Sequence record: OZ195934.1 | Length of the DNA: 64,000 bases | Direction: 5' to 3' (one strand) | Shown here: piece by piece, positions 4,276 through 33,654 of the stretch | How positions within the stretch are numbered: position 1 is the stretch's first letter | Layout of the letters: every line of letters begins with the position of its first letter | Notes under the pieces: model-generated | Seen by the model: the letters and a program-made list of their open reading frames with translations, nothing else | Told to the model about the DNA's origin: nothing | The model's database searches: none | Program-made: the position numbers and the translations under genes

Positions 4276-4320
4276 AAAGCCCCTTAATGAGTGCATTTGC
4301 ATACATTAAGGGGCTTTTTT
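4276..4320 (+). terminator. Rho-independent terminator
   Basis: AAAGCCCCTTAATG...CATTAAGGGGCTTTTTT hairpin plus T-tract. Confidence 0.8.
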
Positions 4321-4359
4321 GTTTCTGTCATAAATACAAGTAAACAAATGAGAGACGCT

Positions 4360-5463
4360 ATGAAAAAATTAAACACATTCATGGAAGAACTTCAGGCACT
4401 TAATGAAGTGTTCGTTCGTGGCGGCAAACCGCGCAACGGGTCTAAAGTTCTTGCAAACGGAAAAAACATTTGGGTATGGAATAACGAGCGTGAGCTTGAA
4501 CGTCTATTGCCTTTCATCAACAAAGAATTCAACACTGATTTCGAAGATCAATACGAAATCGATGAGTGGTACATGAGTGGCGCTGACGCAGTGTACGGGG
4601 AGATTGAACACGGCAGACTAGATATGTCCGGTGATTCGACTTATCGCCCGTCTACAGCGTCTGACACGCTCAGAAAGACGATTAAAGCACTGAATCTAAG
4701 TGGCGTGACTCGTCGTTCACGTTCTTTTACTACTGATTATGACGAAATCGACCACGACTTTGAAACGTCGCGTGCTGAATTCAACAAAAAGCTAGGTCAA
4801 AAAACGTTCTATCACGGTACATCGACGACTTACATCGAATCGATGCTCAAGATCGGTCTAAAACCAGACGTAGGTGAATCGCAGTTCGATAAGATTGAAC
4901 ACAGCGACAAGGTGTTCGTCACGACTGAGCTTGATAAAGCAATGTTCCACGCGACTCATTCAGCGAATCAAAACAGTTCATTCCCTGTAATAATCGAGCT
5001 GAAGATTCCAGACGAGGCTAAACTAGTGTCTGATTACGACGTTGTTATCGACACGCTAGGTGCTGATTCTGACGAAGCACTTGAACTTGGCTACTCTGAC
5101 ATCTATTACGGTGCAGTAAATGGTCGCGATGACGGCAAAAAATACGACGATATGCACCAACGATTTGGTAAGCGTATCGGCAATCTATCGACTAAATTCG
5201 GTGTGTTCGGCTACAAGGGTCGCATCCCTGCAAGTCATTTCACGAAGATTCTAGCAGATACTGACGTAATCGAAGATGAAATCTCGATGAACTTCTATGA
5301 AATGGAAGACGAGTTCAATCTATCTGCGATGACATCAGAAGCGGGAAATCATCGTTCAATTGACTACTGGTCTGAACAACGACCTGACAAATTCATATCG
5401 AATCTTGAAGACCGTTGGGAAGAGATTCGAGACGAGAACGAAGAAGAAGACGATTGGGATTAA
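4360..5463 (+). CDS. Putative ADP-ribosyltransferase-fold protein, possibly head-packaged
   Basis: FYHGTS...GLKP, VFVTT, VIIELKIP; N-terminus MKKLNTFMEELQALNE; late-like CATAAATA at 4329. Confidence 0.65.
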   Translation: MKKLNTFMEELQALNEVFVRGGKPRNGSKVLANGKNIWVWNNERELERLLPFINKEFNTDFEDQYEIDEWYMSGADAVYGEIEHGRLDMSGDSTYRPSTASDTLRKTIKALNLSGVTRRSRSFTTDYDEIDHDFETSRAEFNKKLGQKTFYHGTSTTYIESMLKIGLKPDVGESQFDKIEHSDKVFVTTELDKAMFHATHSANQNSSFPVIIELKIPDEAKLVSDYDVVIDTLGADSDEALELGYSDIYYGAVNGRDDGKKYDDMHQRFGKRIGNLSTKFGVFGYKGRIPASHFTKILADTDVIEDEISMNFYEMEDEFNLSAMTSEAGNHRSIDYWSEQRPDKFISNLEDRWEEIRDENEEEDDWD

Positions 5464-8218: not shown

Positions 8219-8512
8219 ATGGACTTCGGAAAAGCACTAGAAGCACTGAAATCAGGTCAAAAAGTAGCACGCGCAGGTTGGAACGGTCAGGGAATGTTTA
8301 TCGTTCTTATGCCCGAACTATATCTCCCATCGTTTAACACTCAAGACACGTTCAAAAAAGTAAATGATCGAACCGCGAAACACATCGGCAAAGACACTCC
8401 ACTAGACAGTCAGCCGTATATCGCTATGTTCACATCAGATGAAAAGTGGCAGCCAGGTTGGGTTGCGTCGCAAGCTGATCTTCTAAGCGAAGATTGGGCG
8501 ATTGTAGAATAA
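8219..8512 (+). CDS. tad2: DUF2829 / Thoeris anti-defence Tad2-like sponge
   Basis: MDFGKALEALKSGQKVARAGWNG, QPYI, GWVASQADLLSEDW. Confidence 0.85.
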   Translation: MDFGKALEALKSGQKVARAGWNGQGMFIVLMPELYLPSFNTQDTFKKVNDRTAKHIGKDTPLDSQPYIAMFTSDEKWQPGWVASQADLLSEDWAIVE

Positions 8513-8562: not shown

Positions 8563-9126
8563 TTATTTCTGGTCGGTTAATTTCTCTACCCTAACATCTA
8601 ACGCGTCAATGCGTTCTTTCAGCATGTCCGCCTCAGAACCAGTAAATCGGTCGCTGTTAACTGCCTCAAATTGAGTTTGCACTTTAGCAAGTTCAGCTTC
8701 AAAACGTCCATCTTTCTGGTTTCGAGCATCGATCTTGATACCCAATTCTTTCTGAGATTCGTATAATGCATCATACGAATTGCGCAGATTTTCATCCGCT
8801 GCTTGTGATGTTGCTCTTAGAGATTCTACACTTGATCCAAGTCTGCCGTACTGCACTAACATTTCATCTTGTTTTTTCACGATGAGAGATTGTTGTCCCT
8901 CTAGCGAAATAAGTTGCTGTGCTTGTGTAGCATCGGTTAATTTAATGTCGGTAATCTCTTTCATAATCGCGTCGTACTGCTTGATGTTGGTCTCGCCTTG
9001 CGCTTGCACTATTTCTAGTGCTTCCTGCATTCCACCATACTGAGTCGCGACGCTCAATGAAGATATTGATAGAGGAATAAGAATCGTCCCAACCACAGCT
9101 AATGCCACTTGCCAGAACTTTGTCAT
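8563..9126 (-). CDS. Membrane-anchored coiled-coil protein (possible holin or lysis protein by position)
   Basis: N-terminal TM segment plus coiled coil; lies directly after distal fibre genes like T4 t. Confidence 0.45.
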   Translation of the reverse strand: MTKFWQVALAVVGTILIPLSISSLSVATQYGGMQEALEIVQAQGETNIKQYDAIMKEITDIKLTDATQAQQLISLEGQQSLIVKKQDEMLVQYGRLGSSVESLRATSQAADENLRNSYDALYESQKELGIKIDARNQKDGRFEAELAKVQTQFEAVNSDRFTGSEADMLKERIDALDVRVEKLTDQK

Positions 9127-18611: not shown

Positions 18612-18636
18612 AAAAAAAGGACGCTATCTGCGTCCT
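18612..18636 (-). terminator. Rho-independent terminator
   Basis: AGGACGC-AGATA-GCGTCCT-T tract on minus strand. Confidence 0.8.
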
Positions 18637-19148
18637 TTAGTTTTGTTTCTTTTTAGTTTTCGTTTGAGCTTGCGAACTTCTTTACGCTTCGCGATTTTAT
18701 CAGCTCGTCGAACCGCGTCATAATCCGCAGCACAAGACGCTGCAAACGCATCGGGCTTGAATACTGGCTCTTGACCCACATATCCGAAGATCGTGCCCTT
18801 AGCTTCGTTATACGCGACGCTAGACTTGTGTTTAGGGTCTGGGTTAATGTCAACGTGTACTTCAAAGCCGCGAGGGCCGCACATTGGCTTAACTTTCAAC
18901 GCACATTCACCTGCTTTGTATACTTCGTTCATCAAGCGGCTACGAATACCATCAGTAGATGACATATAGGCTTTCTCAGTTTCGATTGTTTTGAATACTT
19001 GAGCGCCTTTACTGCCTTCCAAGTGAATTATGATTACAGTCGCGTAACTGATCATATCACTTTTTCGTTTACTGTCACACCCAACATAGATCGTGCTACT
19101 CGGGTGACTATTTTGAATCGCTGTTTCTACAGCTTCCCAATCGAACAT
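18624..19148 (-). CDS. YkuK/DUF458 RNase H-like protein
   Basis: IYVGCDS, YATVI, RLMNEV, VHVDIN, FKPDAFAASCAAD. Confidence 0.8.
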   Translation of the reverse strand: MFDWEAVETAIQNSHPSSTIYVGCDSKRKSDMISYATVIIIHLEGSKGAQVFKTIETEKAYMSSTDGIRSRLMNEVYKAGECALKVKPMCGPRGFEVHVDINPDPKHKSSVAYNEAKGTIFGYVGQEPVFKPDAFAASCAADYDAVRRADKIAKRKEVRKLKRKLKRNKTKGRR

Positions 19149-19197: not shown

Positions 19198-20631
19198 TTA
19201 TAAAGCGTATCGGTCGACACCGACAGTCTTCAGCATGATTTTCACTGGCTCAAGCTCACCACCCAACAGCGACGTTAGAATTGAAGGGCTGCAACCCGAC
19301 ACTAACGCTGTGTTCGCTTCACCTGATTTAACAGGCACGTTGTCTAGACGACCACGCAAGTTCCAGAACACTAGTTGCGGCATTTCGTAGCCCGCGTTCG
19401 CATACATGACTTTGATTGCATCGAAGTTCGTAGTGTTACGAGTATGCCAGCCACCGCCAGTACGAGCTTGATCGAATTCCATATCGCTCATGATAAGCAA
19501 TTTGGTTGGCATTTCGTCTTGCGACAAGTTTGCCGTACGAGCGCGTTCAAGAAGAACTTCGAAGCATCGTGTGATGTTCGTGCTCATATCTTCGCCAGAT
19601 CGTTGCATGTTGTCAAGACGCGACTTCAAGCTATCACCCGTCAACTTGTGAAAGTGCGGATCACTTGAGAACGAAATGAATTGATCTTTGAAGATACCCT
19701 CATTACGTTCAGCGACGTAGATGCCAAGAGACATCGCAACTTCTTTACAAGTCACACTACCACCGTGTTCACCGTTGATACCACAGCCCATAGAGCCAGA
19801 AACATCAACAACTGGAATCACGCGCTCGTCAGAGCCTTCCATGTAGTTCGGTAGAGCTTTCCATTGCTCATTTGCAACACGATGGTCACCCATTTTAACG
19901 CTGCGAACAACATCGTACGGGTAAACAGCACCTGCATTGATCTTCGCTTCACCTTTCACAAGCGATGTGATGTACTCACCGTATGCAGATTCAGCGTTAC
20001 GACCGAATGCTTTCTGATAGCGTGCAGACGCTACAGATGGCAGTTTGCCGAACTCGATCTCGTCCCAATTACGAGCACACATCTTCTGTTCAACAGTGTC
20101 AGACAAAAGAGAGATCACTTTACGCCACTGCTTCGCGTTTACACCAACCGACTTGATTGTGCGCTTGAACACGATAGCGTTTTTGCTGCGCTCACGAGGA
20201 AACCACTTAGCAGCAAGCGCGTTTTTGTCATTGACAATCGCGTGTGTCCACAGAGTGATAGCATCAGCTTCAAGAGAAGTACCGAACGCAGATACTAAGT
20301 CATCGAAACGACCAAGTTCTGGGATCTTGCGCATAACTAGACGCGCCACTTCTGGTTGTTCTTTACACAGACGTGCAAAGATTTTGCGGAAAGTACCGCG
20401 CTCACCTGCACCGCCACGCACGTCGCGAGACCATAGCAAGATGCGAGTTGCAAGCTCAGGGTTTTCACCGAATGCGCGATTAAACGCAGTTAGTGACTGA
20501 TCATTACCGCGCATAGCGCCGATAGTGAAGAACAAGTTTAGACACTCGTTACCCGAAGTGCTGTGTGTTACTGCACCGTTTGCTGTACGTGAATCGTTAG
20601 ATTGCATAGCGTTCATAAATAAACTAGTCAT
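19198..20631 (-). CDS. DUF2828 Ro60/TROVE-related protein with C-terminal vWA domain
   Basis: RDVRGGAGER, AAKWFPRE, VYPYDV, VVDVSGSM (MIDAS), SDMEFD, LVFWNL; GGAG SD before ATG 20631. Confidence 0.85.
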   Translation of the reverse strand: MTSLFMNAMQSNDSRTANGAVTHSTSGNECLNLFFTIGAMRGNDQSLTAFNRAFGENPELATRILLWSRDVRGGAGERGTFRKIFARLCKEQPEVARLVMRKIPELGRFDDLVSAFGTSLEADAITLWTHAIVNDKNALAAKWFPRERSKNAIVFKRTIKSVGVNAKQWRKVISLLSDTVEQKMCARNWDEIEFGKLPSVASARYQKAFGRNAESAYGEYITSLVKGEAKINAGAVYPYDVVRSVKMGDHRVANEQWKALPNYMEGSDERVIPVVDVSGSMGCGINGEHGGSVTCKEVAMSLGIYVAERNEGIFKDQFISFSSDPHFHKLTGDSLKSRLDNMQRSGEDMSTNITRCFEVLLERARTANLSQDEMPTKLLIMSDMEFDQARTGGGWHTRNTTNFDAIKVMYANAGYEMPQLVFWNLRGRLDNVPVKSGEANTALVSGCSPSILTSLLGGELEPVKIMLKTVGVDRYAL

Positions 20632-20667
20632 TGCTGTAAGCTCCAAATATCAAGGATCAGAAAAATA

Positions 20668-21258
20668 ATGTTTCATATTGTATATCAAATAACAAATTTA
20701 ATAAACAACAAAATTTACGTCGGTAAGCATTCAACCGAAAACATTCATGACGAATACATGGGTTCGGGAAAGCTTTTGCTCAGAGCCATTAAAAAGTATG
20801 GCAAGGAGAATTTCACAAAAGACATACTGTTCGTATCATTAGACGAAAAGGATGCATATAAAGCAGAACATGAGATCGTGAATGAAGATTTTGTTCTCCG
20901 TGAAGACACATATAATCTCAAAGTTGGCGGTCTTGGTGGATCATCAGGAATAGAATCTCCATGCAAAGGTCGTCAACTGAGTGAAGATACTAAACTAAAA
21001 ATGAGAAAAAGTAAACAATTTTCTCAAAAACATTTAGATTATCTCTCAACTAAATTATCTGAGTACAACAAATCTAGACAAGGTGTTCAAAGAGACGATC
21101 TAAAGGGTAACTCAAACCCAATGCATCGAGGTAATTGGCATACACCCCACGGAATATTTGAAACATCAAGCGAAGCAGCGTGTGCCATAAAATGTAGTCA
21201 ATCAACAATTGTTAGACGTTGCAAAAATCCAAATTTTGAGGATTGGTACATCAAATAA
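20668..21258 (+). mobile_element. Free-standing GIY-YIG (Seg-like) homing endonuclease
   Basis: IVYQITNLINNKIYVGKH, YMGSG, YNL; AT-rich, antisense to neighbours. Confidence 0.88.
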
Positions 21259-24793: not shown

Positions 24794-24852
24794 ATATTGT
24801 ACCTTTCATTTCACTTTTCTTCAGCATACTGCATTTTCTAACCGACATAAAC

Positions 24853-24879
24853 AAAAAAACCCGCCTAAAGAGGCGGGTT
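24853..24879 (-). terminator. Terminator ending the tRNA/ncRNA array
   Basis: AACCCGCC-TCTTTA-GGCGGGTT-T tract. Confidence 0.85.
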
Positions 24880-24893
24880 CATCGTGCATAAAC

Positions 24894-25084
24894 AGACATT
24901 CGTGAACAGTTTTAAAGTCTTTCGCATTAATCACATTTGACTTTCATGTTTAACGATACATGAATCCCTACCAACAAGTTGATAGTCGTACCTTCGAGTT
25001 TATTGCTTTAAGTCACCGAGAATGCGGCTATGCGTTACTCTATCTCTTATTTAAGTTTTGTTAGTTGGTTGCTGTACAATGTCT
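24894..25084 (-). ncRNA. Motif RNA E1 (end-paired, ACAGCAACC motif)
   Basis: 5' AGACATT-GT-ACAGCAACC ... ACG-AATGTCT 3'. Confidence 0.7.
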
Positions 25085-25094
25085 TTGCAAAATT

Positions 25095-25183
25095 TGGCGG
25101 AGATACTGGGAGTCGAACCCAGAGAACGCTATTAACGTCCGACACCTTAGCAGGGTGCTGTCATACCATTAGACCATATCTCC
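25095..25183 (-). tRNA. tRNA-Ser(GCT)
   Basis: Cloverleaf, long variable arm, CCA. Confidence 0.95.
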
Positions 25184-25314
25184 AGTTCGGAATGCTGCTC
25201 TCATTCTCAACTACATATTTGCTCTTATCGCTGCCGTGTAGTACGAGCTTCGCAGGTTCGCTTTCGATAATTTTAAGAGCAGGGCGACTCATACCAGCTC
25301 TATTCAAGCGAACT
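25184..25314 (-). ncRNA. Putative structured RNA (~130 nt)
   Basis: AGTTCG/CGAACT, GAAT/ATTC and GCTCTTA/TAAGAGC stems in a tRNA spacer. Confidence 0.4.
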
Positions 25315-25320
25315 TGAATT

Positions 25321-25398
25321 TGGTGCCCAACCCGAGATTCGAACTCGGAACTTCTAGCGTTTGAAACTAGCGACTCTGCCAGATTGGCCTAGTTGGGC
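25321..25398 (-). tRNA. tRNA-Leu(CAA)
   Basis: Cloverleaf, loop TTCAAAC, short variable arm, CCA. Confidence 0.9.
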
Positions 25399-25404
25399 AA
25401 TGTT

Positions 25405-25481
25405 TGGTACGCGTGGGCGGATTCGAACCGCCATCCCTGAGATTTTAAGCCTCATGCCTCTGCCAATTGGACCACACGCGC
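25405..25481 (-). tRNA. tRNA-Leu(TAA)
   Basis: Cloverleaf, loop CTTAAAA, CCA. Confidence 0.92.
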
Positions 25482-25483
25482 AT

Positions 25484-25557
25484 TGGAGCTCGTACACAGA
25501 ATCGAACTGTGACCAAGTGATTTGCAATCACTTATACTACCGTTATACGATACGAGC
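25484..25557 (-). tRNA. tRNA-Cys(GCA)
   Basis: Cloverleaf, loop TTGCAAA, U73, CCA. Confidence 0.93.
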
Positions 25558-25567
25558 AAATGTACTT

Positions 25568-25644
25568 TGGGGTGACAGACGGGGACCGAACCCGCATTTT
25601 CCGGAATCACAACCCGGAGGTATTTCCACTTCACCCACTGCCAC
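25568..25644 (-). tRNA. tRNA-His(GTG)
   Basis: Loop TTGTGAT, C73; atypical T-loop TTCGGTC; flanked by TGTACTTTGG/CCAAAGTACA inverted repeat. Confidence 0.85.
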
Positions 25645-25715
25645 ACCAAAGTACACTCTGGGACATATAACGTTTATCAACCGGACTCATTTACGTGGGT
25701 CATTCGAGCAAAGCA

Positions 25716-25961
25716 CTACTTTGCTAGTAAGTTTTCTTTCTTGAGATATATACTATCACTTGAGAGTTCGCGAGTAAACATATTTCTGAAATAAATTTGC
25801 ACATCGTCTTCAGTCGTGTTCGACTCAATTTTCTGCGCTAATTCGAGAATTTTGCTTCGCTTGTATCCCTTTCGCCAACAGTCAAACATCAGTTTGTCCA
25901 TTTCTTTCAGTTTTTCGACCTGATTCGGGTGTACATATTCGCGTGTTTCAAGTAATGACAT
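25716..25961 (-). CDS. Hypothetical protein in tRNA array
   Basis: ORF from MSLLETR; contains a promoter (TTTACT-17-TAGTAT, 25750-25778) for downstream tRNAs. Confidence 0.55.
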   Translation of the reverse strand: MSLLETREYVHPNQVEKLKEMDKLMFDCWRKGYKRSKILELAQKIESNTTEDDVQIYFRNMFTRELSSDSIYLKKENLLAK

Positions 25962-25981
25962 AGTATATTGCTCATAAAGAA

Positions 25982-26056
25982 TGGTAGTCCCTGAGAATTT
26001 CGAAATCTCGACCTTCGCCATGTAAAAGCGGTGCTCTGCCTCTGAGCTAAGGGACT
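25982..26056 (-). tRNA. tRNA-Val(TAC)
   Basis: Cloverleaf, loop TTTACAT, CCA. Confidence 0.9.
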
Positions 26057-26061
26057 ATAAT

Positions 26062-26137
26062 TGGAACGTGTAACGAGATTCGAACTCGTACCTTCGGTTT
26101 GGAAGACCGTAATGCTACCGTTAAACACCATACACGC
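26062..26137 (-). tRNA. tRNA-Gly(TCC)
   Basis: Cloverleaf, loop CTTCCAA, CCA. Confidence 0.93.
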
Positions 26138-26429
26138 ATTGTTAATCAGACGCATTGAACAAGTCTTGAATTGCTTTCAAGTTGCTCAACTCTACTTCAA
26201 GTGTTCTTATAAAGAACGGGTTAGTCTCTACAGAGAGACGATATTCAACATCGCGAATGAATCGACCGATGTTGCCCTTGCTTAGTGTAAAGTAGTCATG
26301 CTTCTTTCTCTTCGTTTGAGGTTAGAATTAGATGAACGTGTTCGTTAACTTCTTGCTCAATCTGCCATTGTTCATAGACATATTCAGCATACAAAAGTGT
26401 TTCGTACATAATTCACCTTTCTTAAAATG

Positions 26430-26506
26430 TGGTAGTGACTCTGAGGTTCGAACTCAGTACCAGCGGCGTATGAAACCACGACTTTACCATCATAAGCTAA
26501 GTCACC
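26430..26506 (-). tRNA. tRNA-Met(CAT)
   Basis: Cloverleaf, loop TTCATAC, CCA. Confidence 0.85.
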
Positions 26507-26614
26507 AAAGCAGATATTAACGTATTTAATCAGCACACGGGCTTGACACCACATTGTTTGTGGTCTACGTGAAGAACCTCTGCACAACAATCCCGCTCTA
26601 ATTGCGTTATGTGG

Positions 26615-26920
26615 TGACTGTCACGAGGAATCTAGTCTTCTTTAAGTGCCTTTCGGCTGTAATAAAGTACAGACAATAACGAAGTGTTTTTTCGTCTTTT
26701 ACATAAATCGCAGTTGACTATCTTGTTACTCTAACAAGCAAGTATCGACTACCTCAGCGTCGCGCCTAGACTGTGTATTTCTACACGCCACATCTTTCGT
26801 TACAAGTCTCGACCTAGCACGTTGTTGCTGTGCTGAACGTCTCGAACCCACGCTAAGACCTAATCATTGTTTTAGTAGATTAGTAGTTTGGTTGCTGCAT
26901 ATTGTCTTACGTGACAGTCA
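26615..26920 (-). ncRNA. Large motif RNA E2 (nested end-pairing)
   Basis: 11-bp IR TGACTGTCACG/CGTGACAGTCA enclosing AGACAATA-TGCAGCAACC...TATTGTCT (26671-26907). Confidence 0.7.
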
Positions 26921-27002
26921 AACACACAATGCCGAAACAATATGCCGAGACGTTCACGCTCTTATTTTTCAAGTTCACACTATCGTAGTGACTCTCGTGA
27001 TA

Positions 27003-27078
27003 TGGCATCCCCAGAAAGATTTGAACTTTCAACCCCGAATTTAGAAGATTCGTGCTCTTCCAATTGAGCTATGAGGAC
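27003..27078 (-). tRNA. tRNA-Arg(TCT)
   Basis: Cloverleaf, loop CTTCTAA, CCA. Confidence 0.93.
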
Positions 27079-27154
27079 ATCAATAAGATTCGAACCATAA
27101 GATCTTGTGACACGATGGTAGTAAAGAGAGTGTCTATCTCATGTGTTCGAAATT

Positions 27155-27230
27155 TGGTGGAGCTTGAGGGTTACGATCCCTCTACTTCTCCGTGCAAGGG
27201 AGATGTTTTACCGATTAGCACTAAAGCCCC
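27155..27230 (-). tRNA. tRNA-Ala(TGC)
   Basis: G3:U70, loop CTTGCAC; atypical T-loop ATCGTAA. Confidence 0.9.
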
Positions 27231-27237
27231 AAATTGT

Positions 27238-27450
27238 CTATTTTAACTCTGTGACGCCTATATTTTTCCAATCAAACAGACCATCGACATCTTCAAGCGA
27301 TTCGCCAGTCACGTCTGCAATATAAGCAGCGACTTTCGATTCGATTTCGTCATTACTTAGAGACTCATCAACAGTGAAAATCTCTTCGTTGTTATTACCA
27401 CCGAATGTGCCGTTAATGTCGTATTCACACCAAACTGATATGTATTTCAT
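27238..27450 (-). CDS. Small acidic hypothetical protein
   Basis: 70-aa ORF with GAGA SD. Confidence 0.6.
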   Translation of the reverse strand: MKYISVWCEYDINGTFGGNNNEEIFTVDESLSNDEIESKVAAYIADVTGESLEDVDGLFDWKNIGVTELK

Positions 27451-27475
27451 AATGTCTCACAAAGTTAATAAAATA

Positions 27476-27550
27476 TGGTGCTCCCGGACAGACTCGAACT
27501 GCCATAACCTGATTACAAAACAGGGATAATCGCCTTTATATTACGGGAGC
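27476..27550 (-). tRNA. tRNA-Thr(TGT)
   Basis: Cloverleaf, loop TTTGTAA, CCA. Confidence 0.9.
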
Positions 27551-27556
27551 GAAACT

Positions 27557-27666
27557 GAGTGTCGTTTATACCGCGTCTCCAAGACCTGAGATACCAACTC
27601 AGCATGGGATTCGAACCCACCGACGTTTCTTGTATCGAAAGAAATTTTAAATTGCTGTAAACACTC
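27557..27666 (-). ncRNA. Circularly permuted tRNA-like RNA E3 (YrlA-like topology)
   Basis: GAGTGT-T-TACAGCAA, anticodon-like hairpin, GTGGG TTCGAAT CCCAT T-arm, loop-closed acceptor, D-like hairpin, AAACG-ACACTC. Confidence 0.8.
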
Positions 27667-27675
27667 TTAGTATTT

Positions 27676-27749
27676 TGGCTGGGGATAACGGACTCGAACC
27701 GATACTGCGAAAGTCAAAGTTTCGTATGCTGCCATTACATCAATCCCCT
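27676..27749 (-). tRNA. tRNA-Gln(TTG)
   Basis: Cloverleaf, loop CTTTGAC, CCA. Confidence 0.92.
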
Positions 27750-27757
27750 ATTGTTCT

Positions 27758-27982
27758 TTAGCGACTCGAATTGATCTCATCGATCATTCGTTTAGCTAGT
27801 TTCGTAGCTAGTGCTTTATCAGCATCGCCAGTTGTTTCTATGTCGTATGCAATTTTACTCACATACTTTGAGTCTAGCGCACCCGCTGATTGTTTAGACC
27901 AGTGATCCTTGACTTTCTGATATTTCGTCATGTCAATCGAATCTTTTGTCGCTTCACCCAAAAATTCTGCTAATGTTTTCAT
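27758..27982 (-). CDS. Candidate internal head protein (T4 IP-like)
   Basis: MKTLAEFLGEA capsid-targeting-like N-terminus; TATAAATA at 28012-28019. Confidence 0.7.
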   Translation of the reverse strand: MKTLAEFLGEATKDSIDMTKYQKVKDHWSKQSAGALDSKYVSKIAYDIETTGDADKALATKLAKRMIDEINSSR

Positions 27983-28022
27983 ATCTCTATTCTTATTAAA
28001 GTGTAAAAACATATTTATATGC

Positions 28023-28171
28023 AAGATAACATACACGACGGCGTAAGTAGTCGTTCTTATGTTTAGACTAGAAATCCACGTCACATCATTAATGCTATAA
28101 TTGCGCCACTCTCTACTATGAATATGTTATGCATTATTCATGCAGACTCTTCTTGCGCTGTAAATTATCTT
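28023..28171 (-). ncRNA. Motif RNA E4
   Basis: AAGATAA-T-TTACAGCGCAA ... ATG-TTATCTT; starts right after tRNA-Asp CCA. Confidence 0.65.
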
Positions 28172-28247
28172 TGGCGGAACTGACGGGGCTCGAACCCGCT
28201 TCCTTCTCCGTGACAGGGAGGTATGCACCCAGTTACACCTCAGCTCC
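28172..28247 (-). tRNA. tRNA-Asp(GTC)
   Basis: Cloverleaf, loop CTGTCAC, G73. Confidence 0.94.
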
Positions 28248-28250
28248 CCA

Positions 28251-28340
28251 AAGATAACTCTTTGTATTAAGACACTGTAATCGTTTGGTTTTTTCTTCAA
28301 ATAAAAAATACTGGTTTGTTTGCAGAATGATTACTATCTT
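28251..28340 (-). ncRNA. Motif RNA E5 (CTGCAAAC subtype)
   Basis: AAGATAG-T-AATCATTCTGCAAAC ... GAG-TTATCTT. Confidence 0.6.
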
Positions 28341-28345
28341 AAATC

Positions 28346-28421
28346 TGGCAGGGACACTCAGATTCGAACTGAGACCAACGGGTTTGGAATCCGTCATGCT
28401 GCCATTAAACACCATGTCCCT
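28346..28421 (-). tRNA. tRNA-Trp(CCA)
   Basis: Cloverleaf, loop TTCCAAA, G73. Confidence 0.9.
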
Positions 28422-28469
28422 ATTGCGTATGAGGTGGCTTAAATCAGTGGCCACTCTCACGCTAAAATT

Positions 28470-28543
28470 TGGTACTCACGAAGAGAATCGAACTCTTATC
28501 TGACGGTTATCAGCCGTCTGCTTTACCGTTAAGCTACGCGAGT
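28470..28543 (-). tRNA. tRNA-Ile(GAT)
   Basis: Cloverleaf, loop CTGATAA. Confidence 0.94.
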
Positions 28544-28608
28544 AAAGTACGCTCGAAAGCGCACAATGTTAATCGGTTAAGTGACTAGCTCGACCAATGT
28601 AACATATT

Positions 28609-28701
28609 TGGAGGAAGATAACGGAGTCGAACCGTCACCGCGCTACTAACGCAATGGGCTGGTTTTCAAGACCAGTTGCGAACCACATCGCCCTATCTTC
28701 C
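28609..28701 (-). tRNA. tRNA-Ser(TGA)
   Basis: Loop CTTGAAA, long variable arm, CCA. Confidence 0.9.
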
Positions 28702-28706
28702 TTTAA

Positions 28707-28955
28707 TTACTTATGTCGTCCCCAATACATCTTATCAAAGCTGTTTAGGTATTCTTCGACTTTAGCTACATCAGCCGCACTAACAACCCATTCGTTGTCT
28801 TGAGTCGTGCGTTTATTCGCAGGAACTGCTTTAGCGCCTAATTTAGCCATTGTGTTTCTGTGTCGTTCGCGATCCATTGATCCACTAAAAAGTGAGCCAG
28901 ATACGCCGTACGTAACGTCCGTTGCTTCTGCAAGAAACTCTTGTAAAGTTTTCAT
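28707..28955 (-). CDS. Candidate internal head protein (T4 IP-like)
   Basis: MKTLQEFLAEA N-terminus; TCTAAATA late-like promoter near 28981. Confidence 0.7.
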   Translation of the reverse strand: MKTLQEFLAEATDVTYGVSGSLFSGSMDRERHRNTMAKLGAKAVPANKRTTQDNEWVVSAADVAKVEEYLNSFDKMYWGRHK

Positions 28956-28999
28956 GTTTTCCACCATTGTCTTAAAACAATATTTAGACGTTTAAAAAT

Positions 29000-29076
29000 T
29001 GGATGCGTGGGAGTGGATTCGAACCACTGACCTCCGGCTTATGAGACCGACGAGCTGACCGCTGCTCTACCCCGCA
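29000..29076 (-). tRNA. tRNA-fMet-like (CAT)
   Basis: TGCGGGGTAGAGCAG initiator-like 5' end, loop CTCATAA; one extra A in acceptor 3' strand. Confidence 0.8.
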
Positions 29077-29080
29077 ATTA

Positions 29081-29266
29081 TTACTTACTGAACTGCACTA
29101 CACAAGTATCTGATTGATACACTATCGTGCCAGTTGCTTCCGCGTCTATTTGAACGATGCAGCCATTTGCCCCATCTTCACCGCGTGATGCTACATCTTT
29201 AATCGAAATGCCACTTGAACAAGCTGTCAATGACAGTGCAAGTGCTAATGCTGCTATTGCTTTCAT
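29081..29266 (-). CDS. Small lipoprotein
   Basis: Signal peptide with lipobox LTAC; two further Cys. Confidence 0.7.
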   Translation of the reverse strand: MKAIAALALALSLTACSSGISIKDVASRGEDGANGCIVQIDAEATGTIVYQSDTCVVQFSK

Positions 29267-29282
29267 GATGTTCACCTTAATT

Positions 29283-29369
29283 TGGTGGTTCGCCTAGGAC
29301 TCGAACCTAGAAGCCCGTTCAAGGGCGAGGGATTTACAATCCCCTGACTTACCATTAGTCTAACGAACC
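29283..29369 (-). tRNA. tRNA-Tyr(GTA)
   Basis: Loop TTGTAAA, long variable arm, CCA. Confidence 0.94.
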
Positions 29370-29375
29370 AGAATT

Positions 29376-29449
29376 TGGTACTCCGTACGGGAGTCGAACC
29401 CGTCCCTTTAGATTGAAAGTCTAACGATCTACCAATAATCTAACGGAGC
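29376..29449 (-). tRNA. tRNA-Glu(TTC)
   Basis: Cloverleaf, loop CTTTCAA. Confidence 0.93.
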
Positions 29450-29572
29450 ATTGAAAAATTATTTATTAGCAAACTAGCAAGTTATCTGAGATAATCATTT
29501 AACGGGCCCAGCTAGTAAACTAATAGATAATTTCTCATCTAGAGATAGTTTAGTGACTTCTCAACGGTCAAT
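29450..29572 (-). ncRNA. Putative rod-like RNA (~120 nt)
   Basis: AAATTAT/ATAATTT, ATTAG/CTAAT, ACTAGC/GCTAGT stems separated by 2x2 internal loops. Confidence 0.45.
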
Positions 29573-29573
29573 T

Positions 29574-29648
29574 TGGTGCGTCGCCTGAGATTCGAACTCA
29601 GACTTTTCTGGTTAAAAGCCAGATGTACTACCATTATACGAACGACGC
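29574..29648 (-). tRNA. tRNA-Lys(TTT)
   Basis: Cloverleaf, loop CTTTTAA. Confidence 0.94.
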
Positions 29649-29654
29649 ATTAAC

Positions 29655-29729
29655 TGGTGCACCCTCTCGGAATCGAACCGAGCACTGTGGGACTTCACTC
29701 CACCGCTTTTCCTGATAAGCTAAGGGTAC
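29655..29729 (-). tRNA. tRNA-Phe(GAA)
   Basis: Cloverleaf, atypical loop GTGAAGT. Confidence 0.85.
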
Positions 29730-29735
29730 TTTATT

Positions 29736-29810
29736 TGGCGGACGTGGAGAATTTCGAAATCTCGACCCCGGTGTTAACAGCACCGCGCTCTGCCTCTGAG
29801 CTACACATCC
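29736..29810 (-). tRNA. tRNA-Asn(GTT)
   Basis: Cloverleaf, loop CTGTTAA, G73. Confidence 0.94.
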
Positions 29811-29815
29811 AAATT

Positions 29816-29892
29816 TGGTACGCAGAGAGAGATTCGAACTCTCAACTCCTAGTTTCTAAGACTAGCGGCTCTGCCAATTGGCCTACCTGCGC
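29816..29892 (-). tRNA. tRNA-Leu(TAG)
   Basis: Cloverleaf, loop CTTAGAA. Confidence 0.92.
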
Positions 29893-29905
29893 ACTGTGTA
29901 AATAA

Positions 29906-29980
29906 TGGTCGGAGTAGAAGAATTCGAATCTTCACCGCTCGGCCCCAAACCGACTATGCTGCCATTAACACCATACTCCG
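29906..29980 (-). tRNA. tRNA-Pro(TGG)
   Basis: Cloverleaf, loop TTTGGGG. Confidence 0.92.
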
Positions 29981-30008
29981 AAAAACTTTTGTAGAACTTC
30001 GTTCTTAC

Positions 30009-30202
30009 ATTGTACATGATGTTTTCTTCGTTGTAAACATCTTTTTTGAAAAACTTTTCGTTCGTTTTCGAACGTTTAAATGCTTTTCTCTATTGTACAT
30101 GATGTTTTCGTCATTGTAAACATCTTTTTTAAATCTTTTTGAATGACTTAACGTTTTTGTTTTAACACGTTAATCATATCACTCGTTTACGACTCGTTAA
30201 AC
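30009..30202 (-). promoter_or_regulatory. Three tandem early promoters driving the tRNA array
   Basis: TTTACA-17-TACAAT twice (30009-30037, 30092-30120, near-duplicate) and TTTAAC-17-TATGAT (30173-30201). Confidence 0.8.
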
Positions 30203-30278
30203 ACTTATTTGTGAATAATTTCGTTAAATTCTATCATCGCGACAGTAGATAACGAGACACGGTCCTAAACGTATCGTT

Positions 30279-30354
30279 TGGCACTCGATATAAGATTCGA
30301 ACTTATAACCTGCGCCTTCGTAGGACGCTGCTCTTCCAATTGAGCTAATCGAGC
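30279..30354 (-). tRNA. tRNA-Arg(ACG)
   Basis: Cloverleaf, loop CTACGAA. Confidence 0.93.
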
Positions 30355-30381
30355 ATTAAAGCTTGTTTGCTTTCTTTGTTT

Positions 30382-30410
30382 ATCATACTCTGCTTTGAAA
30401 GCATGTTAAA
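30382..30410 (-). promoter_or_regulatory. Early promoter
   Basis: TTTAAC-17-TATGAT. Confidence 0.7.
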
Positions 30411-30437
30411 CAAAGAATTTCAGTTTATTTCGCCCAT

Positions 30438-30462
30438 AAAAAAGGACGCTAATCTGCGTCCT
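30438..30462 (-). terminator. Rho-independent terminator
   Basis: AGGACGC-AGATTA-GCGTCCT-T tract. Confidence 0.8.
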
Positions 30463-30723
30463 CAAGTATACTTCTATGTTATACTTTCGGACTACATTCG
30501 TGGATCCCATTTCTGGTTGCCAAACGTCGGATTCGCCAGATATACCGATACTGAGCTAAAGCGCATTTCGCTTCGTAAAATCTCAATATGTGTATTAGAA
30601 TGTGGCATCGTGGCTCTCTTTTCGAACGTAAAAATTGTTGTTTTGTTTTTTCTATAATTGTACTTATAAGACTAAAATCGAGGTTTCGTGCGTTTTTTGC
30701 AAAAAACCTCGAAAAAAGTGAAA

Positions 30724-30963
30724 TTATTTTTTAAAGTGCTTTCTTTTATTGCACTCAGCTAAGATTTCATTGTCATAATGATTCTGAAGCTGCTTGAATT
30801 TCTTGTGCTGATCTGGCGTTAGCTCATTCTCATCACGAAGATTTTTCAAGAACCCAAGAGGTTTACGAAACGACTTGCGATACGAGTCTAAACGCTGATC
30901 AGTCAAACCGACTAGTTGTTTAGGCGTTAGCAATGTCTTATTAATGTCAAAGTTCTTACTCAT
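30724..30963 (-). CDS. Hypothetical basic protein
   Basis: 79-aa ORF with AAGGGG SD. Confidence 0.65.
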   Translation of the reverse strand: MSKNFDINKTLLTPKQLVGLTDQRLDSYRKSFRKPLGFLKNLRDENELTPDQHKKFKQLQNHYDNEILAECNKRKHFKK

Positions 30964-30985
30964 GTGTTACCCCTTGTATTGAAAT

Positions 30986-31100
30986 TGGCTGACCGATGCG
31001 GGACTCGAACCCACGACCACGTGCTTAACAGGCAATTAGAAATGCGGTAGCGATACTTATCAATATCATTTACGTGCTCTACCACTGAGCTAATCGGTCA
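30986..31100 (-). ncRNA. tRNA-Asn(GTT)-like RNA with 38-nt insertion after nt 28
   Basis: Removing 31035-31072 restores CGTGC-CTGTTAA-GCACG arm; 8-bp acceptor, G73, CCA. Confidence 0.8.
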
Positions 31101-31105
31101 ATTGT

Positions 31106-31349
31106 TTAGTTCGCTTTTGCAGTGCACCGAGCCACCTCAGAATTGATACATTTCGTTTGACGCGCATTCGGATGGTTACGCTTTGCGTCGTGAGTCTGTC
31201 AGCGATGCATGGCATACACACACCCCGTTTCTCACCTACTCTGCCCTACAGACGTTATCTGCTTGGTTAACAATTGCACTCGCATTAGGTATAACATGTC
31301 ACCGTCATCTTCCGGACGATTTCAGTGTATGCACTCAAAAGCGAACTAA
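31106..31349 (-). ncRNA. Putative 244-nt RNA closed by a 20-bp terminal stem
   Basis: TTAGTTCGCTTTTGAGTGCA pairs with TGCACTGCAAAAGCGAACTAA. Confidence 0.65.
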
Positions 31350-31362
31350 TGTTGATTCTATT

Positions 31363-31911
31363 CTACTTCTCTCGCAATGTAAACAGCAGATTGCGATAAT
31401 CGAAGTTTCGTTTGTTCTTTGTATTGTAGAAGCTAGTCCAGTCGATTGCAACGGGACAATTCTTACTACCGACACGAGCAATGAATATCTCGTGTGTCGC
31501 GCTGTGCTTCGCGTTATAAGCTCTTACTCGTTTTTCATAGTGAGCTATGTATTCTGCACAAGCAGCGTTGTAATCAGCTCTAGAGAACGTCTTACCTTTC
31601 ATAAAGCGTGCATCAAGATACGGACGAATAACCCGAACGCGTTCTCCCGACCATGCCATATTAAAGCTGTTTTCAATTTCACCTAGAATTTGACCAGTCT
31701 TTAAGTTACGGCTCAGTATGACCCAACAGCGTGTACGACGATAGTCTTCAAAACGCATCACCTTAATGTGTGCATTAATGAATTCATCGCGTTTAGCGTT
31801 GCACTCAATGCGTGCTGCACGACGCTGTTCTTCAGTCATCGACTCTCGAACTTCTTTCGGATACAATGTAGCAAAGCGTTTCGGGCAATCTGCCATCGTT
31901 AGCTTTTTCAT
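31363..31911 (-). CDS. Hypothetical basic protein
   Basis: 182-aa ORF coupled to upstream gene. Confidence 0.65.
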   Translation of the reverse strand: MKKLTMADCPKRFATLYPKEVRESMTEEQRRAARIECNAKRDEFINAHIKVMRFEDYRRTRCWVILSRNLKTGQILGEIENSFNMAWSGERVRVIRPYLDARFMKGKTFSRADYNAACAEYIAHYEKRVRAYNAKHSATHEIFIARVGSKNCPVAIDWTSFYNTKNKRNFDYRNLLFTLREK

Positions 31912-32117
31912 ATCATACCTCTCTTGCGTTTAAGTTGCGAACGCTCAATTTGATTGAAGACTTGCTTATCTTTTGCTTTATTGCGTCGAGAATTACCCCA
32001 ACGACTTCCAGCACATACACCAAAGCGGTCTTTTTTAAGCTTCTTAGCTAACCACAATGGTACTTCGACACGAGCACGTAAGTAGTGCTTTGCGATGTCT
32101 TTATAAGTCTTGCCCAT
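31908..32117 (-). CDS. Small basic protein
   Basis: ORF from MGKTYKD with AGAGGA SD. Confidence 0.6.
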   Translation of the reverse strand: MGKTYKDIAKHYLRARVEVPLWLAKKLKKDRFGVCAGSRWGNSRRNKAKDKQVFNQIERSQLKRKRGMI

Positions 32118-32130
32118 GATAATTTCCTCT

Positions 32131-32371
32131 TGTTGCCGCTCCGTGGAATCGAACCACGTCAAACACAACACCTCGTCAGCCCAATAAGAGTTTCGAAGTA
32201 AGAGCTTACTAGCACATTAAAGCACGGGGCATTATTTCTCTCAAGCAGTTTTCGACCACCGCGTGAGCTTTCTTATCCCCAGTCCCAGTGATTCAGAACG
32301 AAACATGATAGCGAGTCATGAGTTGAACTAATGTTGGGAAAACACTGCGTATTGTACACCGAGTAAGCGGC
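32131..32371 (-). ncRNA. tmRNA-shaped 241-nt tRNA-like RNA
   Basis: GCCGCTT/GAGCGGC acceptor, CGTGG TTCGATT CCACG T-arm, ACAATAC/GTGTTGT helix. Confidence 0.7.
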
Positions 32372-32385
32372 ATTGTTAATAAACT

Positions 32386-32505
32386 TGGTGCCCTACGTGA
32401 ACGTTGAACGTTTTTCTACTTAGCTTCCATCTACCTCACTCAACGAAGAGCTATAGATTCCGTCAAGGTCTACTTCCACTTGACTAAGCGATTCAAACGT
32501 AGGAC
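32386..32505 (-). ncRNA. 120-nt CCA-terminated non-cloverleaf RNA
   Basis: GTCCTACG/CGTAGGGC-ACCA end; internal CTTAG/CTAAG, TCAAG/CTTGA, TCTAT/GTAGA stems. Confidence 0.7.
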
Positions 32506-32544
32506 ATATTTTGAAAGTAGTCTCGTAAAACTACTTTGAGAATA

Positions 32545-32622
32545 TGGTGACCCTCGTGGGACTCGAACCCAACTATCTTTCGGTTATGAGCCGACTGCTT
32601 TTACCAGTTAAGCTAAAGGGCC
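32545..32622 (-). tRNA. tRNA-Met or Ile2 (CAT)
   Basis: GGCCCTT acceptor (ileX-like), loop CTCATAA, CCA. Confidence 0.85.
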
Positions 32623-33005: not shown

Positions 33006-33128
33006 TGGTGGAGAGTGCGGGATTCGAACCACGCGGCCAAAAGATTTACTTAGTTAGTGTTTGCAGCATGAATACTTGACAATATTCTGTCAACGTTCTT
33101 TTGCTCTACCAGACTGAGCTAACTCTCC
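33006..33128 (-). ncRNA. tRNA-Tyr(GTA)-like RNA with ~45-nt insertion in anticodon loop
   Basis: Canonical acceptor, D and T arms; AAAGA/TCTTT stem enclosing 52 nt that end AAGTAAA. Confidence 0.8.
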
Positions 33129-33140
33129 ATTTAAAACACA

Positions 33141-33264
33141 TTGAGCAGGGTGCAGGATTCGAACCTGCGTCACGATCTTAGAATGATATGCTGTTTGGGT
33201 TGCTGAATACAAGCTATACAACTTGCGTTTATGCTACGTGTGCTAGCCACTACACCAACCCTGC
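33141..33264 (-). ncRNA. tRNA-Arg(TCT)-like RNA with 49-nt insertion after nt 28
   Basis: Removing 33188-33236 gives CGATC-ATTCTAA-GATCG; ends CAA; 17-bp flanking IR. Confidence 0.8.
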
Positions 33265-33517
33265 TCAATGTGTTCTAGTGCAATGCCATATGAACTCACA
33301 TGGCATCACTGAACCTGTTTTATATTGCCTTAGCTAACCAACACAATCTGAAATCGTGCGCTTTAATAAAGGGAGGGCGTCCCTCTTCGCCAGTTAGCAT
33401 AGATGTGTTGCTATGCACCCATTTGTCAATCATGTCCAAGGCAAACAGAACAATGAATACGAGTGCGAGAAGATATACAATCAAATTGAAACACCTCGCT
33501 AAAAAGTTAGAGCATAT

Positions 33518-33639
33518 TGGTCGTGCGTACTAGAATCGAACTAGTCCTACGATCTCCTAATGATATGCGTTATTGGTTGCTGAATACTTACTTGTCAGTA
33601 AGCGTTATGCTACGTGTGCTGCCACTACACCAACGCACG
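33518..33639 (-). ncRNA. tRNA-Leu(TAG)-like RNA with 48-nt insertion after nt 28
   Basis: Removing 33565-33612 gives CGATC-ATTAGGA-GATCG; ACCA end; 21-bp perfect flanking IR. Confidence 0.8.
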
Positions 33640-33654
33640 ACCAATATGCTCTAG

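Follow-up and report, generated by a model that had tools for sequence, protein, structure and literature searches.

The window analysed here is a stretch of 64,000 nucleotides (OZ195934.1) from a KVP40-like Vibrio phage of the Straboviridae. Its tRNA operon ends with a tRNA-Ser(GCU) gene whose CCA is encoded (25097-25095), and this gene is followed by a non-coding element, E1, and by an intrinsic terminator, the stem proper of which occupies 24880-24857 with the U run after it. E1 thus lies between the CCA and the operon terminator, as a preliminary description had placed it. The element begins with AAGACAUU at 25085, and its final AAUGUCUG is at 24893. On the minus strand E1 contains no ORF of at least 40 codons and no promoter-like site of its own. 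A gene for a protein with DUF2828 and DUF7788 (vWA) domains is located 4.4 kb downstream on the same strand but in another transcription unit, with the terminator and about 11 small ORFs standing between the two. The E1 region of the window is identical to that of phage 6E35.1a and of the D48x/K5xx oyster-farm isolates. Coordinates are collected in Table 1.

Table 1. Positions of E1, its parts and associated features. Coordinates refer to the window except for the leader mini handle, which is given on the contigs of relatives.
Feature	Position	Strand	Remarks
tRNA cluster, 26 genes	25095-32622	minus	
tRNA-Ser(GCU), last tRNA of the operon	25095-25183	minus	ARAGORN; Rfam tRNA, 58 bits
E1	25085-24893	minus	between tRNA-Ser(GCU) and the intrinsic terminator
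E1 leader, 10 nt, AAUUUUGCAA	25085-25094	minus	
P1 5' strand, AGACAUU	25078-25084	minus	closing stem of the handle
Single-stranded handle motif, GUA-CAGCAA-CCA	25066-25077	minus	family consensus NUA-CAGCAAaCA
E1 interior hairpin, CAUGU-AUCGUUAA-ACAUG	24945-24962	minus	
E1 3' hairpin, UGUGA...UCACG	24901-24935	minus	A-rich loop (AAAGAC..AAAAC); abuts P1; also in E2
P1 3' strand, AAUGUCU	24894-24900	minus	followed by G at 24893
E1 trailer, UUUAUGCACGAU	24881-24892	minus	
Intrinsic terminator of the tRNA operon	24850-24880	minus	10-bp GC-rich stem and U run
DUF2828 + DUF7788 (vWA) protein	19198-20646	minus	proposed partner; Pfam
Leader mini handle in relatives	L001, about 8350-8392; L002, about 385-430	minus	
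E2, paralogue of E1	26670-26908	minus	handle AGACAAUA/UAUUGUCU; same 3' domain, other interior
E3, third handle RNA	27555-27667	minus	GAGUGU/ACACUC with UUA-CAGCAA; between tRNA-Gln and tRNA-Thr

E1 is conserved in all KVP40-like vibriophages. BLAST matched it in 48-49 Vibrio phage records, with both ends and several internal blocks kept down to about 75% identity. We aligned the copies of KVP40, VH7D/ValKK3/phi-ST2, nt-1/CZ01, VS1/VS2 and F86/K566. Copies range from 193 to 276 nt in length; their ends are invariant, internal blocks are conserved and the inserted hairpins are lineage-specific. Rfam searches with E1 and with E2, a paralogue within the tRNA cluster, returned only tRNAs and terminator-driven noise at both gathering and permissive thresholds.

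The minimum free energy (MFE) fold of the single sequence pairs the ends of E1 through 13 pairs with one 1-nt and one 2-nt bulge, and the stability of the whole fold is unremarkable relative to shuffled sequences (z -1.2). The bulged end stem drawn in the preliminary description is therefore reproduced exactly by the fold, but only its closing part is conserved. Seven pairs, AGACAUU/AAUGUCU (P1), are intact and invariant in 11/11 E1 orthologues, whereas 8-9 of the 11 cannot form three of the pairs in the bulged extension. The 3' bases of the extension instead form a local hairpin, UGnGA/UCnCG, that abuts P1 and is 100% paired in the 11 orthologues, with a change from A-U to U-A between lineages. 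When E1 and E2 are considered together, this 3' hairpin is 92% paired, two of its positions vary (G-C/C-G/G-U and A-U/U-A/C-G), and its covariation was reached by 0/500 shuffles. The interior hairpin keeps its loop, AYYGUYAA, on stems that read CAUGU/ACAUG, UUCGU/ACGAA or UUCGU/ACGGA in relatives, such that three stem positions have changed on both sides. RNAalifold, applied to eight KVP40-type copies, added an outer helix, GCAAU/AUUGC, which joins the 10-nt leader to the trailer and is invariant in 8/8 KVP40-type orthologues; in the window type it is shorter, and the leader UGCA can pair with the trailer UGCA. We also considered an interior pseudoknot of CAGCAACCAAC with GUUGG and ruled it out, as F86 alters the hairpin and the pseudoknot is not kept. 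Because P1 is invariant among E1 orthologues, support for this stem comes from E2 and the wider family. With three covarying helices, E1 is, on comparative grounds, a real, conserved and structured non-coding RNA.

P1 and the single-stranded motif that follows it, hereafter the handle, recur within the same operon, and the window contains at least three handle RNAs that are paralogues of each other, E1, E2 and E3. The 5' 20 nt of E1 are identical to the start of E2 (26908-26889) at 17/20 positions, a match that 0/100 shuffles produced. The preliminary description had noted this resemblance, as well as a compensatory swap from U-A to A-U, which is indeed found at stem position 6 (AGACAUU/AAUGUCU in E1 and AGACAAU/AUUGUCU in E2). 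It had further called the interior unrelated to E2. This is correct for the central ~100-140 nt, where 435/500 shuffles reach the alignment score, but not for the last 58 nt of E1, a 3' domain common to both RNAs that aligns without gaps at 71% identity (score reached in 0/500 shuffles). The strict definition of the handle given below picks out only E1 and E2 in the 64-kb window, each on the same (minus) strand as the DUF2828 ORF. A perfect 10-bp complement, GACUGUCACG/CGUGACAGUC, pairs 26910-26919 with 26616-26625 on the minus strand and brackets E2 together with a downstream GAAA-loop hairpin, which suggests that the E2 unit may be longer, about 304 nt. This outer helix is not conserved, its 5' partner being absent in K566 and not evident in KVP40.

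A weak match to a covariance model of eleven ~60-nt mini handles led us to E3; the model missed E1 and E2. The MAFFT alignments of these mini handles misplace some 3' strands, and no pair counts were taken from them. E3 contains a T-arm-like GGGUUCGAAUCCC and two further hairpins, and its orthologue is the element that follows tRNA-Gln in KVP40 and VH7D. It resembles an AGAGUGA subfamily of handles that is found elsewhere beside DUF2828 genes.

Four tRNA-like genes on the minus strand of the window (33520-33650, 33140-33265, 33009-33128 and 30990-31099) have acceptor, D and T arms, and the anticodon loop is replaced by an insert of about 50 nt; in two of the genes the acceptor helix is extended to 13-19 bp. 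The insert consists of a short hairpin and then UAUUCAGCAACC(A), which is weaker in the fourth gene, and amounts to a circularly permuted form of the E1/E2 handle motif in which the helix is capped and the ends are at the acceptor stem. Two of the four score 49-50 bits against the Rfam tRNA model, and one is a pseudo-tRNA in the annotation of 6E35.1a. We regard a sub-threshold match to the YrlA model at 33070-33196 as an artefact of neighbouring tRNA-like genes, the T-arm of one and the D-arm of the following one making up the match.

Other non-coding spacers of the window and of related phages also contain CAGCAA(C/A)CA on the minus strand, and each such element is closed by a stem of 6-8 bp that differs in sequence. 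The layout is the same as in E1: the 5' strand leads into NUA-CAGCAA, and the 3' strand has an A-rich stretch before it and a G after it. To count such elements we defined a strict handle as a 7-bp stem starting with AG, a spacer of 2-4 nt, CAGCAA, the complement of the stem ending in CU within 450 nt, and then G. We scanned 84 loci (962 kb) centred on DUF2828(+vWA) genes in diverse phage contigs and found 43 strict handles on the strand of the gene and 0 on the opposite strand. Dinucleotide shuffles of the same loci (n = 20) contained 0-3 handles each, and 974 kb of unrelated viral contigs contained 7 with both strands summed. The handles cluster at the gene itself, with 31/43 no more than 1 kb downstream of the DUF2828 stop codon and 6/43 no more than 1 kb upstream, or 37/43 within 1 kb overall. 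They use 19 different arm sequences, every one complementary to its partner, but because the search itself required pairing, it is the enrichment over controls and not the pairing that counts as evidence.

The RNAs closed by these handles are between 32 and about 310 nt long and have unrelated interiors. Further members include a mini form of ~60 nt in VH7D and both a mini form and a ~310-nt form in phage D479. The handle also adjoins DUF2828 in phages that have no tRNA within 21 kb. A loose pattern scan of IMG/VR for the 3' domain gave nearly all chance matches, only those in KVP40-type contigs being real, and its loci were reused as a negative control. Rfam contains no family for the DUF2828-adjacent elements. 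Given its distribution, the E1 handle is a widespread RNA motif on the coding strand beside DUF2828/vWA genes of diverse marine phages, and by this motif E1 belongs to a previously undescribed RNA family.

Several loci show particular arrangements. In several contigs without a nearby tRNA (among them L136, 11932-12300, and L174, 7431-7720), the DUF2828 gene is followed directly, in a fixed order, by a mini handle of ~58 nt, a large handle RNA and a terminator; mini handles of this type have an unstructured loop with repeated AGCAA, and the large RNAs measure 230-260 nt. Many large handle RNAs carry ACGAAC 1-4 nt ahead of the 3' strand. In contig L183, a full-length tmRNA (8605-9054, 75 bits) and then about 10 tRNAs occur ~2 kb downstream of a DUF2828 gene and its handle RNA.

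We next consider the protein whose gene the handles accompany. Translation of the DUF2828 ORF in the window probably begins with the ATG at 20631, and the protein has a conserved DxSxS motif. Proteins of this family are very common, and a single search scored over 7,900 relatives, the majority encoded on marine phage contigs. Their annotation is just 'RNA-binding protein' or 'hypothetical'; PHROG 850 carries the former label. In the literature searched, DUF2828 is nowhere discussed as an RNA-binding protein. An AlphaFold model of medium confidence (pLDDT 74) was compared with the PDB, and its best fold match was Ro60 of Thermus phage phiLo (E 4.6e-8, TM 0.54), followed by Xenopus Ro (E 1.8e-6, TM 0.56), in both cases over the full length. 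The DUF2828 protein is thus predicted to have a Ro60-like fold. Sequence profiles and HMM searches of the PDB did not reach Ro60, and the Pfam assignment is DUF2828 with DUF7788, not TROVE. Directly downstream of the DUF2828 gene there is an ORF with a PF04308 RNaseH_like (DUF458) domain (18624-19148, minus), and the two genes are likewise paired in a metagenomic T4-like contig that is only distantly related (L135, 11747-12289). Judging from this repeated neighbourhood, the PF04308 ORF may belong to the same system.

The handle is found not only beside the DUF2828 gene but also in its mRNA leader. In 6E35.1a, KVP40, phi-pp2 and nt-1, the leader reads (A)GACAUU-NUA-CAGCAA...GAGGAA...AAUGUC, with the same 5' arm and motif as E1; the loop contains the Shine-Dalgarno sequence, and the AUG is part of the 3' strand. 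The leader of D479 has an analogous mini handle, AGAAAU/AUUUCU. The 5' arm is missing from the leader of the window (20631-20700) and from that of CZ01, because a gene for a GIY-YIG homing endonuclease (20668-21258 on the plus strand of the window) lies immediately upstream of the DUF2828 gene and occupies the site of the arm; UUACAGCAAUG is all that is left of the handle. The leader copy ties the particular handle of E1 to the DUF2828 gene within the same phage lineage. Translational operators that mimic the primary RNA ligand of a protein are known from ribosomal proteins and from the autoregulation of T4 RegA, gp32 and gp43. The leader handle of relatives resembles them in repeating P1 and CAGCAA of E1 around the start signals, and it looks like a translational operator of the DUF2828 mRNA. 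It departs from them in that the window leader lacks the 5' arm, and its role as operator is one we infer.

For the sequence of the window no RNA run is listed, and RNA evidence came from a homologue of E1 rather than from this phage itself, in the form of assembled contigs from one environmental sample. Four oligo-dT RNA-seq runs of a single seawater sample each contained contigs of 295-297 nt corresponding to the E1 homologue. We compared these with a KVP40-like IMG/VR contig (L106, with E1 at 6210-5962 on the minus strand), to which they are about 94% identical. The RNA contigs span exactly 5949/5950-6219 of that contig, that is, from 1-2 nt after the CCA of tRNA-Ser to ~12 nt past AAUGUCUG. 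They stop just before the terminator hairpin and contain neither tRNA nor terminator. Their 3' end is joined to their 5' end, the alignment going back 270, with a rotation that differs between runs and a length equal to a 267-nt cycle plus k-1. One of the RNA runs also contained an adjacent stretch of this phage region. The head-to-tail junction was absent from the contigs of IMG/VR and of the JGI metagenomes, which gives no indication that the DNA carries a tandem copy. An isolated, head-to-tail-joined unit of 267 nt implies defined ends and possibly a circular RNA. These results argue that the E1 homologue is processed to an RNA with defined ends and that some of its molecules, at least, are circular or joined head to tail; the junction may also have arisen from template switching by the reverse transcriptase. 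By analogy, we predict that the mature E1 of the window starts 1-2 nt after CCA and ends near 24881.

Among known systems, E1 is nearest in function and architecture to the Y RNAs. Bacterial Y RNAs, or YrlA, are bound by Ro60 (Rsr) (Chen et al. 2014, PMC4201824), and Thermus phage phiLo encodes a Ro60 that works with the Y-like RNAs Yrl1/2 and host PNPase (PMC12135203). Like the Y RNAs, E1 is small and structured, and its ends pair into a terminal stem that adjoins a conserved motif. As with Y RNAs, one genome encodes several paralogues in which the other half is modular, and some handle RNAs carry a tRNA-like domain (T-arm, hairpin and D-arm). One such RNA, of 129 nt in the metagenomic T4-like contig L135, has its arms in that order and reaches a sub-threshold 32 bits with the YrlA model. 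Most strict handles are, moreover, encoded beside the gene of a ring-plus-vWA protein with a predicted fold nearest to Ro60, E1 itself being 4.4 kb away.

The differences are equally clear. The partner has DUF2828 and DUF7788 in place of TROVE, and any relation to Ro60 is undetectable in sequence and confined to the level of fold. E1-E3 are embedded in a tRNA operon, minimal handle forms measure 32-60 nt, the handle is repeated in the mRNA leader of the partner, and a head-to-tail-joined form is possible. Unlike YrlA, E1 has no tRNA-like domain and no T-loop. It lies outside the Rfam YrlA family (RF02553, gathering score 69 bits), with no match at E<=10, and related handle RNAs score only 28-32 bits. 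The Ro-binding sequence is GGUCCGA in vertebrates and GNCGAAN0-1G, on the 5' side, in bacteria (PMC4201824), with a CGAA bulge as a feature of binding (PMC12135203). Where Y RNAs have GGUCCGA or GNCGAA in a bulged helix, handle RNAs have a single-stranded NUA-CAGCAA after an AG...CU stem. Neither known sequence is present in the E1 stem, the 5' strand of which carries UACAGCAA and is followed by GUACAGCAA; CGAA occurs in E1 only on the 3' side, at the junction of the UCnCG|AA hairpin with P1, and is absent from E2. The comparison of the end stem to a Ro-binding helix in the preliminary description is accordingly unsupported, given the broken extension, the missing GGUCCGA/GNCGAA and the lack of a YrlA match.

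T4 offers a likeness of another kind. Its species 1 and 2 RNAs (rnaC and rnaD) are small, stable and of unknown function, and their genes close the tRNA cluster at its 3' end, on the same strand as the tRNAs. Homology of E1 or E2 to them was ruled out, as the local alignments score no higher than the shuffle means, with 264/300 and 281/300 shuffles reaching the observed score; the sequences are dissimilar and only the genomic position is alike. No DUF2828 gene was found in the T4 region examined, and no handle motif in the 6-kb locus.

In our assessment, E1 is probably a Y-RNA-like, stand-alone RNA that derives from the 3' end of the phage tRNA operon and partners a divergent Ro60, the DUF2828 protein. 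This retains the core of the original proposal of a constant protein-binding handle with variable cargo, which the comparative data support well: one handle closes unrelated interiors, clusters with DUF2828 genes, recurs in the leader and accompanies a protein with a Ro60-like predicted fold. The proposal needs amending in that the shared part exceeds 20 nt, and protein binding enters it as a conjecture. E1 could instead be a cis-acting structure of the operon's 3' trailer, without a dedicated protein partner, that guides trimming of the last tRNA by RNase E, RNase III or an exonuclease or protects the transcript. We regard this as unlikely. A trailer structure would be at home directly after the last tRNA and before the terminator, would need no promoter of its own on the minus strand and would have a parallel in T4, which likewise keeps stable RNAs at the 3' end of its tRNA cluster; yet the handle is also found away from tRNAs, beside DUF2828 genes in phages without a nearby tRNA, as well as between tRNAs (E2 and E3) and in the DUF2828 mRNA leader. 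Furthermore, the E1 homologue persists in RNA libraries as an isolated unit without tRNA, and the sequence of the internal hairpin loops is conserved. The tight, strand-specific linkage of handles to DUF2828 genes, together with the leader copy, points to the DUF2828 protein and makes it quite unlikely that E1 is a trans-acting regulatory or decoy RNA with the handle as a mere cassette for processing or stability. The action of such an RNA would rest on base pairing or on the titration of a host factor, for instance Hfq, ProQ, an anticodon nuclease or an RNA ligase. It would be in keeping with the conserved A-rich single-stranded loops (AAAGAC..AAAAC and repeated AGCAA) and with paralogue interiors that differ, as different targets would predict, and the members with tRNA-like domains could mimic tRNAs.

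It is highly improbable that the motif acts at the level of DNA, whether as a promoter, as a site for a homing endonuclease or for recombination, or as a miniature mobile element bounded by terminal inverted repeats of 7 bp. The inverted termini are superficially transposon-like and GIY-YIG homing endonuclease genes are nearby, but the arms vary freely and stay complementary, which is RNA-like covariation and unlike a transposase-bound repeat. Strand specificity is strict (43 vs 0), the internal hairpins covary, and RNA libraries contain the element in contigs whose ends are defined. We give least credence of all to E1 being a mere unprocessed operon trailer with chance pairing and no stable ends, the null named in the preliminary description. 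A single-sequence fold no stabler than shuffles is what this would predict, but it is contradicted by conservation with covariation across genera of KVP40-like phages, by the existence of the paralogue E2 and of a family-wide motif, and by the discrete RNA contigs of the homologue.

If E1 is indeed a Y-RNA-like partner of the DUF2828 protein, its life cycle might run as follows. RNase E-type cleavage acts on tRNA 3' trailers, and release of E1 after CCA is compatible with it. By comparison with the 94%-identical homologue, E1 would be cut from the operon transcript 1-2 nt after the CCA of the tRNA, and its 3' end would come to lie about 12 nt past the closing stem with the terminator hairpin removed. 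Its ends would then lie on the outer helix, which could hold them together for ligation, and some molecules may become circles. The DUF2828 protein would bind the handle, much as Ro60 binds the terminal stem of Y RNAs, and the variable interiors would serve as functional cargo, tRNA-like in E3-type members and made up, in E1 and E2, of different hairpins that are also conserved. In relatives with a leader handle, free DUF2828 protein may repress its own synthesis, with the E RNAs titrating the protein. The physiological role is the weakest step; by analogy with Ro60/Y RNA and with the Ro60 of phiLo, it could be RNA surveillance, or the particle might recruit an exoribonuclease of the infected host, perhaps in connection with the large tRNA set of the phage. 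A more far-reaching version, which we hold to be possible but doubtful, is that E1-type RNAs are covalently circular in infected cells, their ends sealed by, for example, a phage or host RNA ligase, and form an exonuclease-resistant RNP with the Ro60-like DUF2828 protein, the handle doubling as operator. This would constitute a widespread, unannotated circular Y-like system of marine myoviruses.

Ro60/Y-RNA particles represent a conserved and poorly understood form of RNA surveillance, and their phage versions are only beginning to be studied. What may be new here is a Y-RNA-like family for a divergent Ro60 with its own handle, mini forms, an apparent operator copy and perhaps a circular form. 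The searchable handle (AG-stem, NUA-CAGCAA) provides a candidate ligand for the DUF2828 family. The handle would also give 'empty' spacers in phage tRNA clusters a function and predicts an autoregulatory operator, and culturable Vibrio phages such as KVP40 and 6E35 make these predictions directly testable. Should the head-to-tail junction reflect true circles, E1-type RNAs would count among the rare circular non-coding RNAs that a bacteriophage genome encodes. As an observation unrelated to E1, a 390-aa ORF at 4291-5463 (plus) has a sub-threshold match to the PARP catalytic domain (E 0.008, 16 bits against a cutoff of 26.7).
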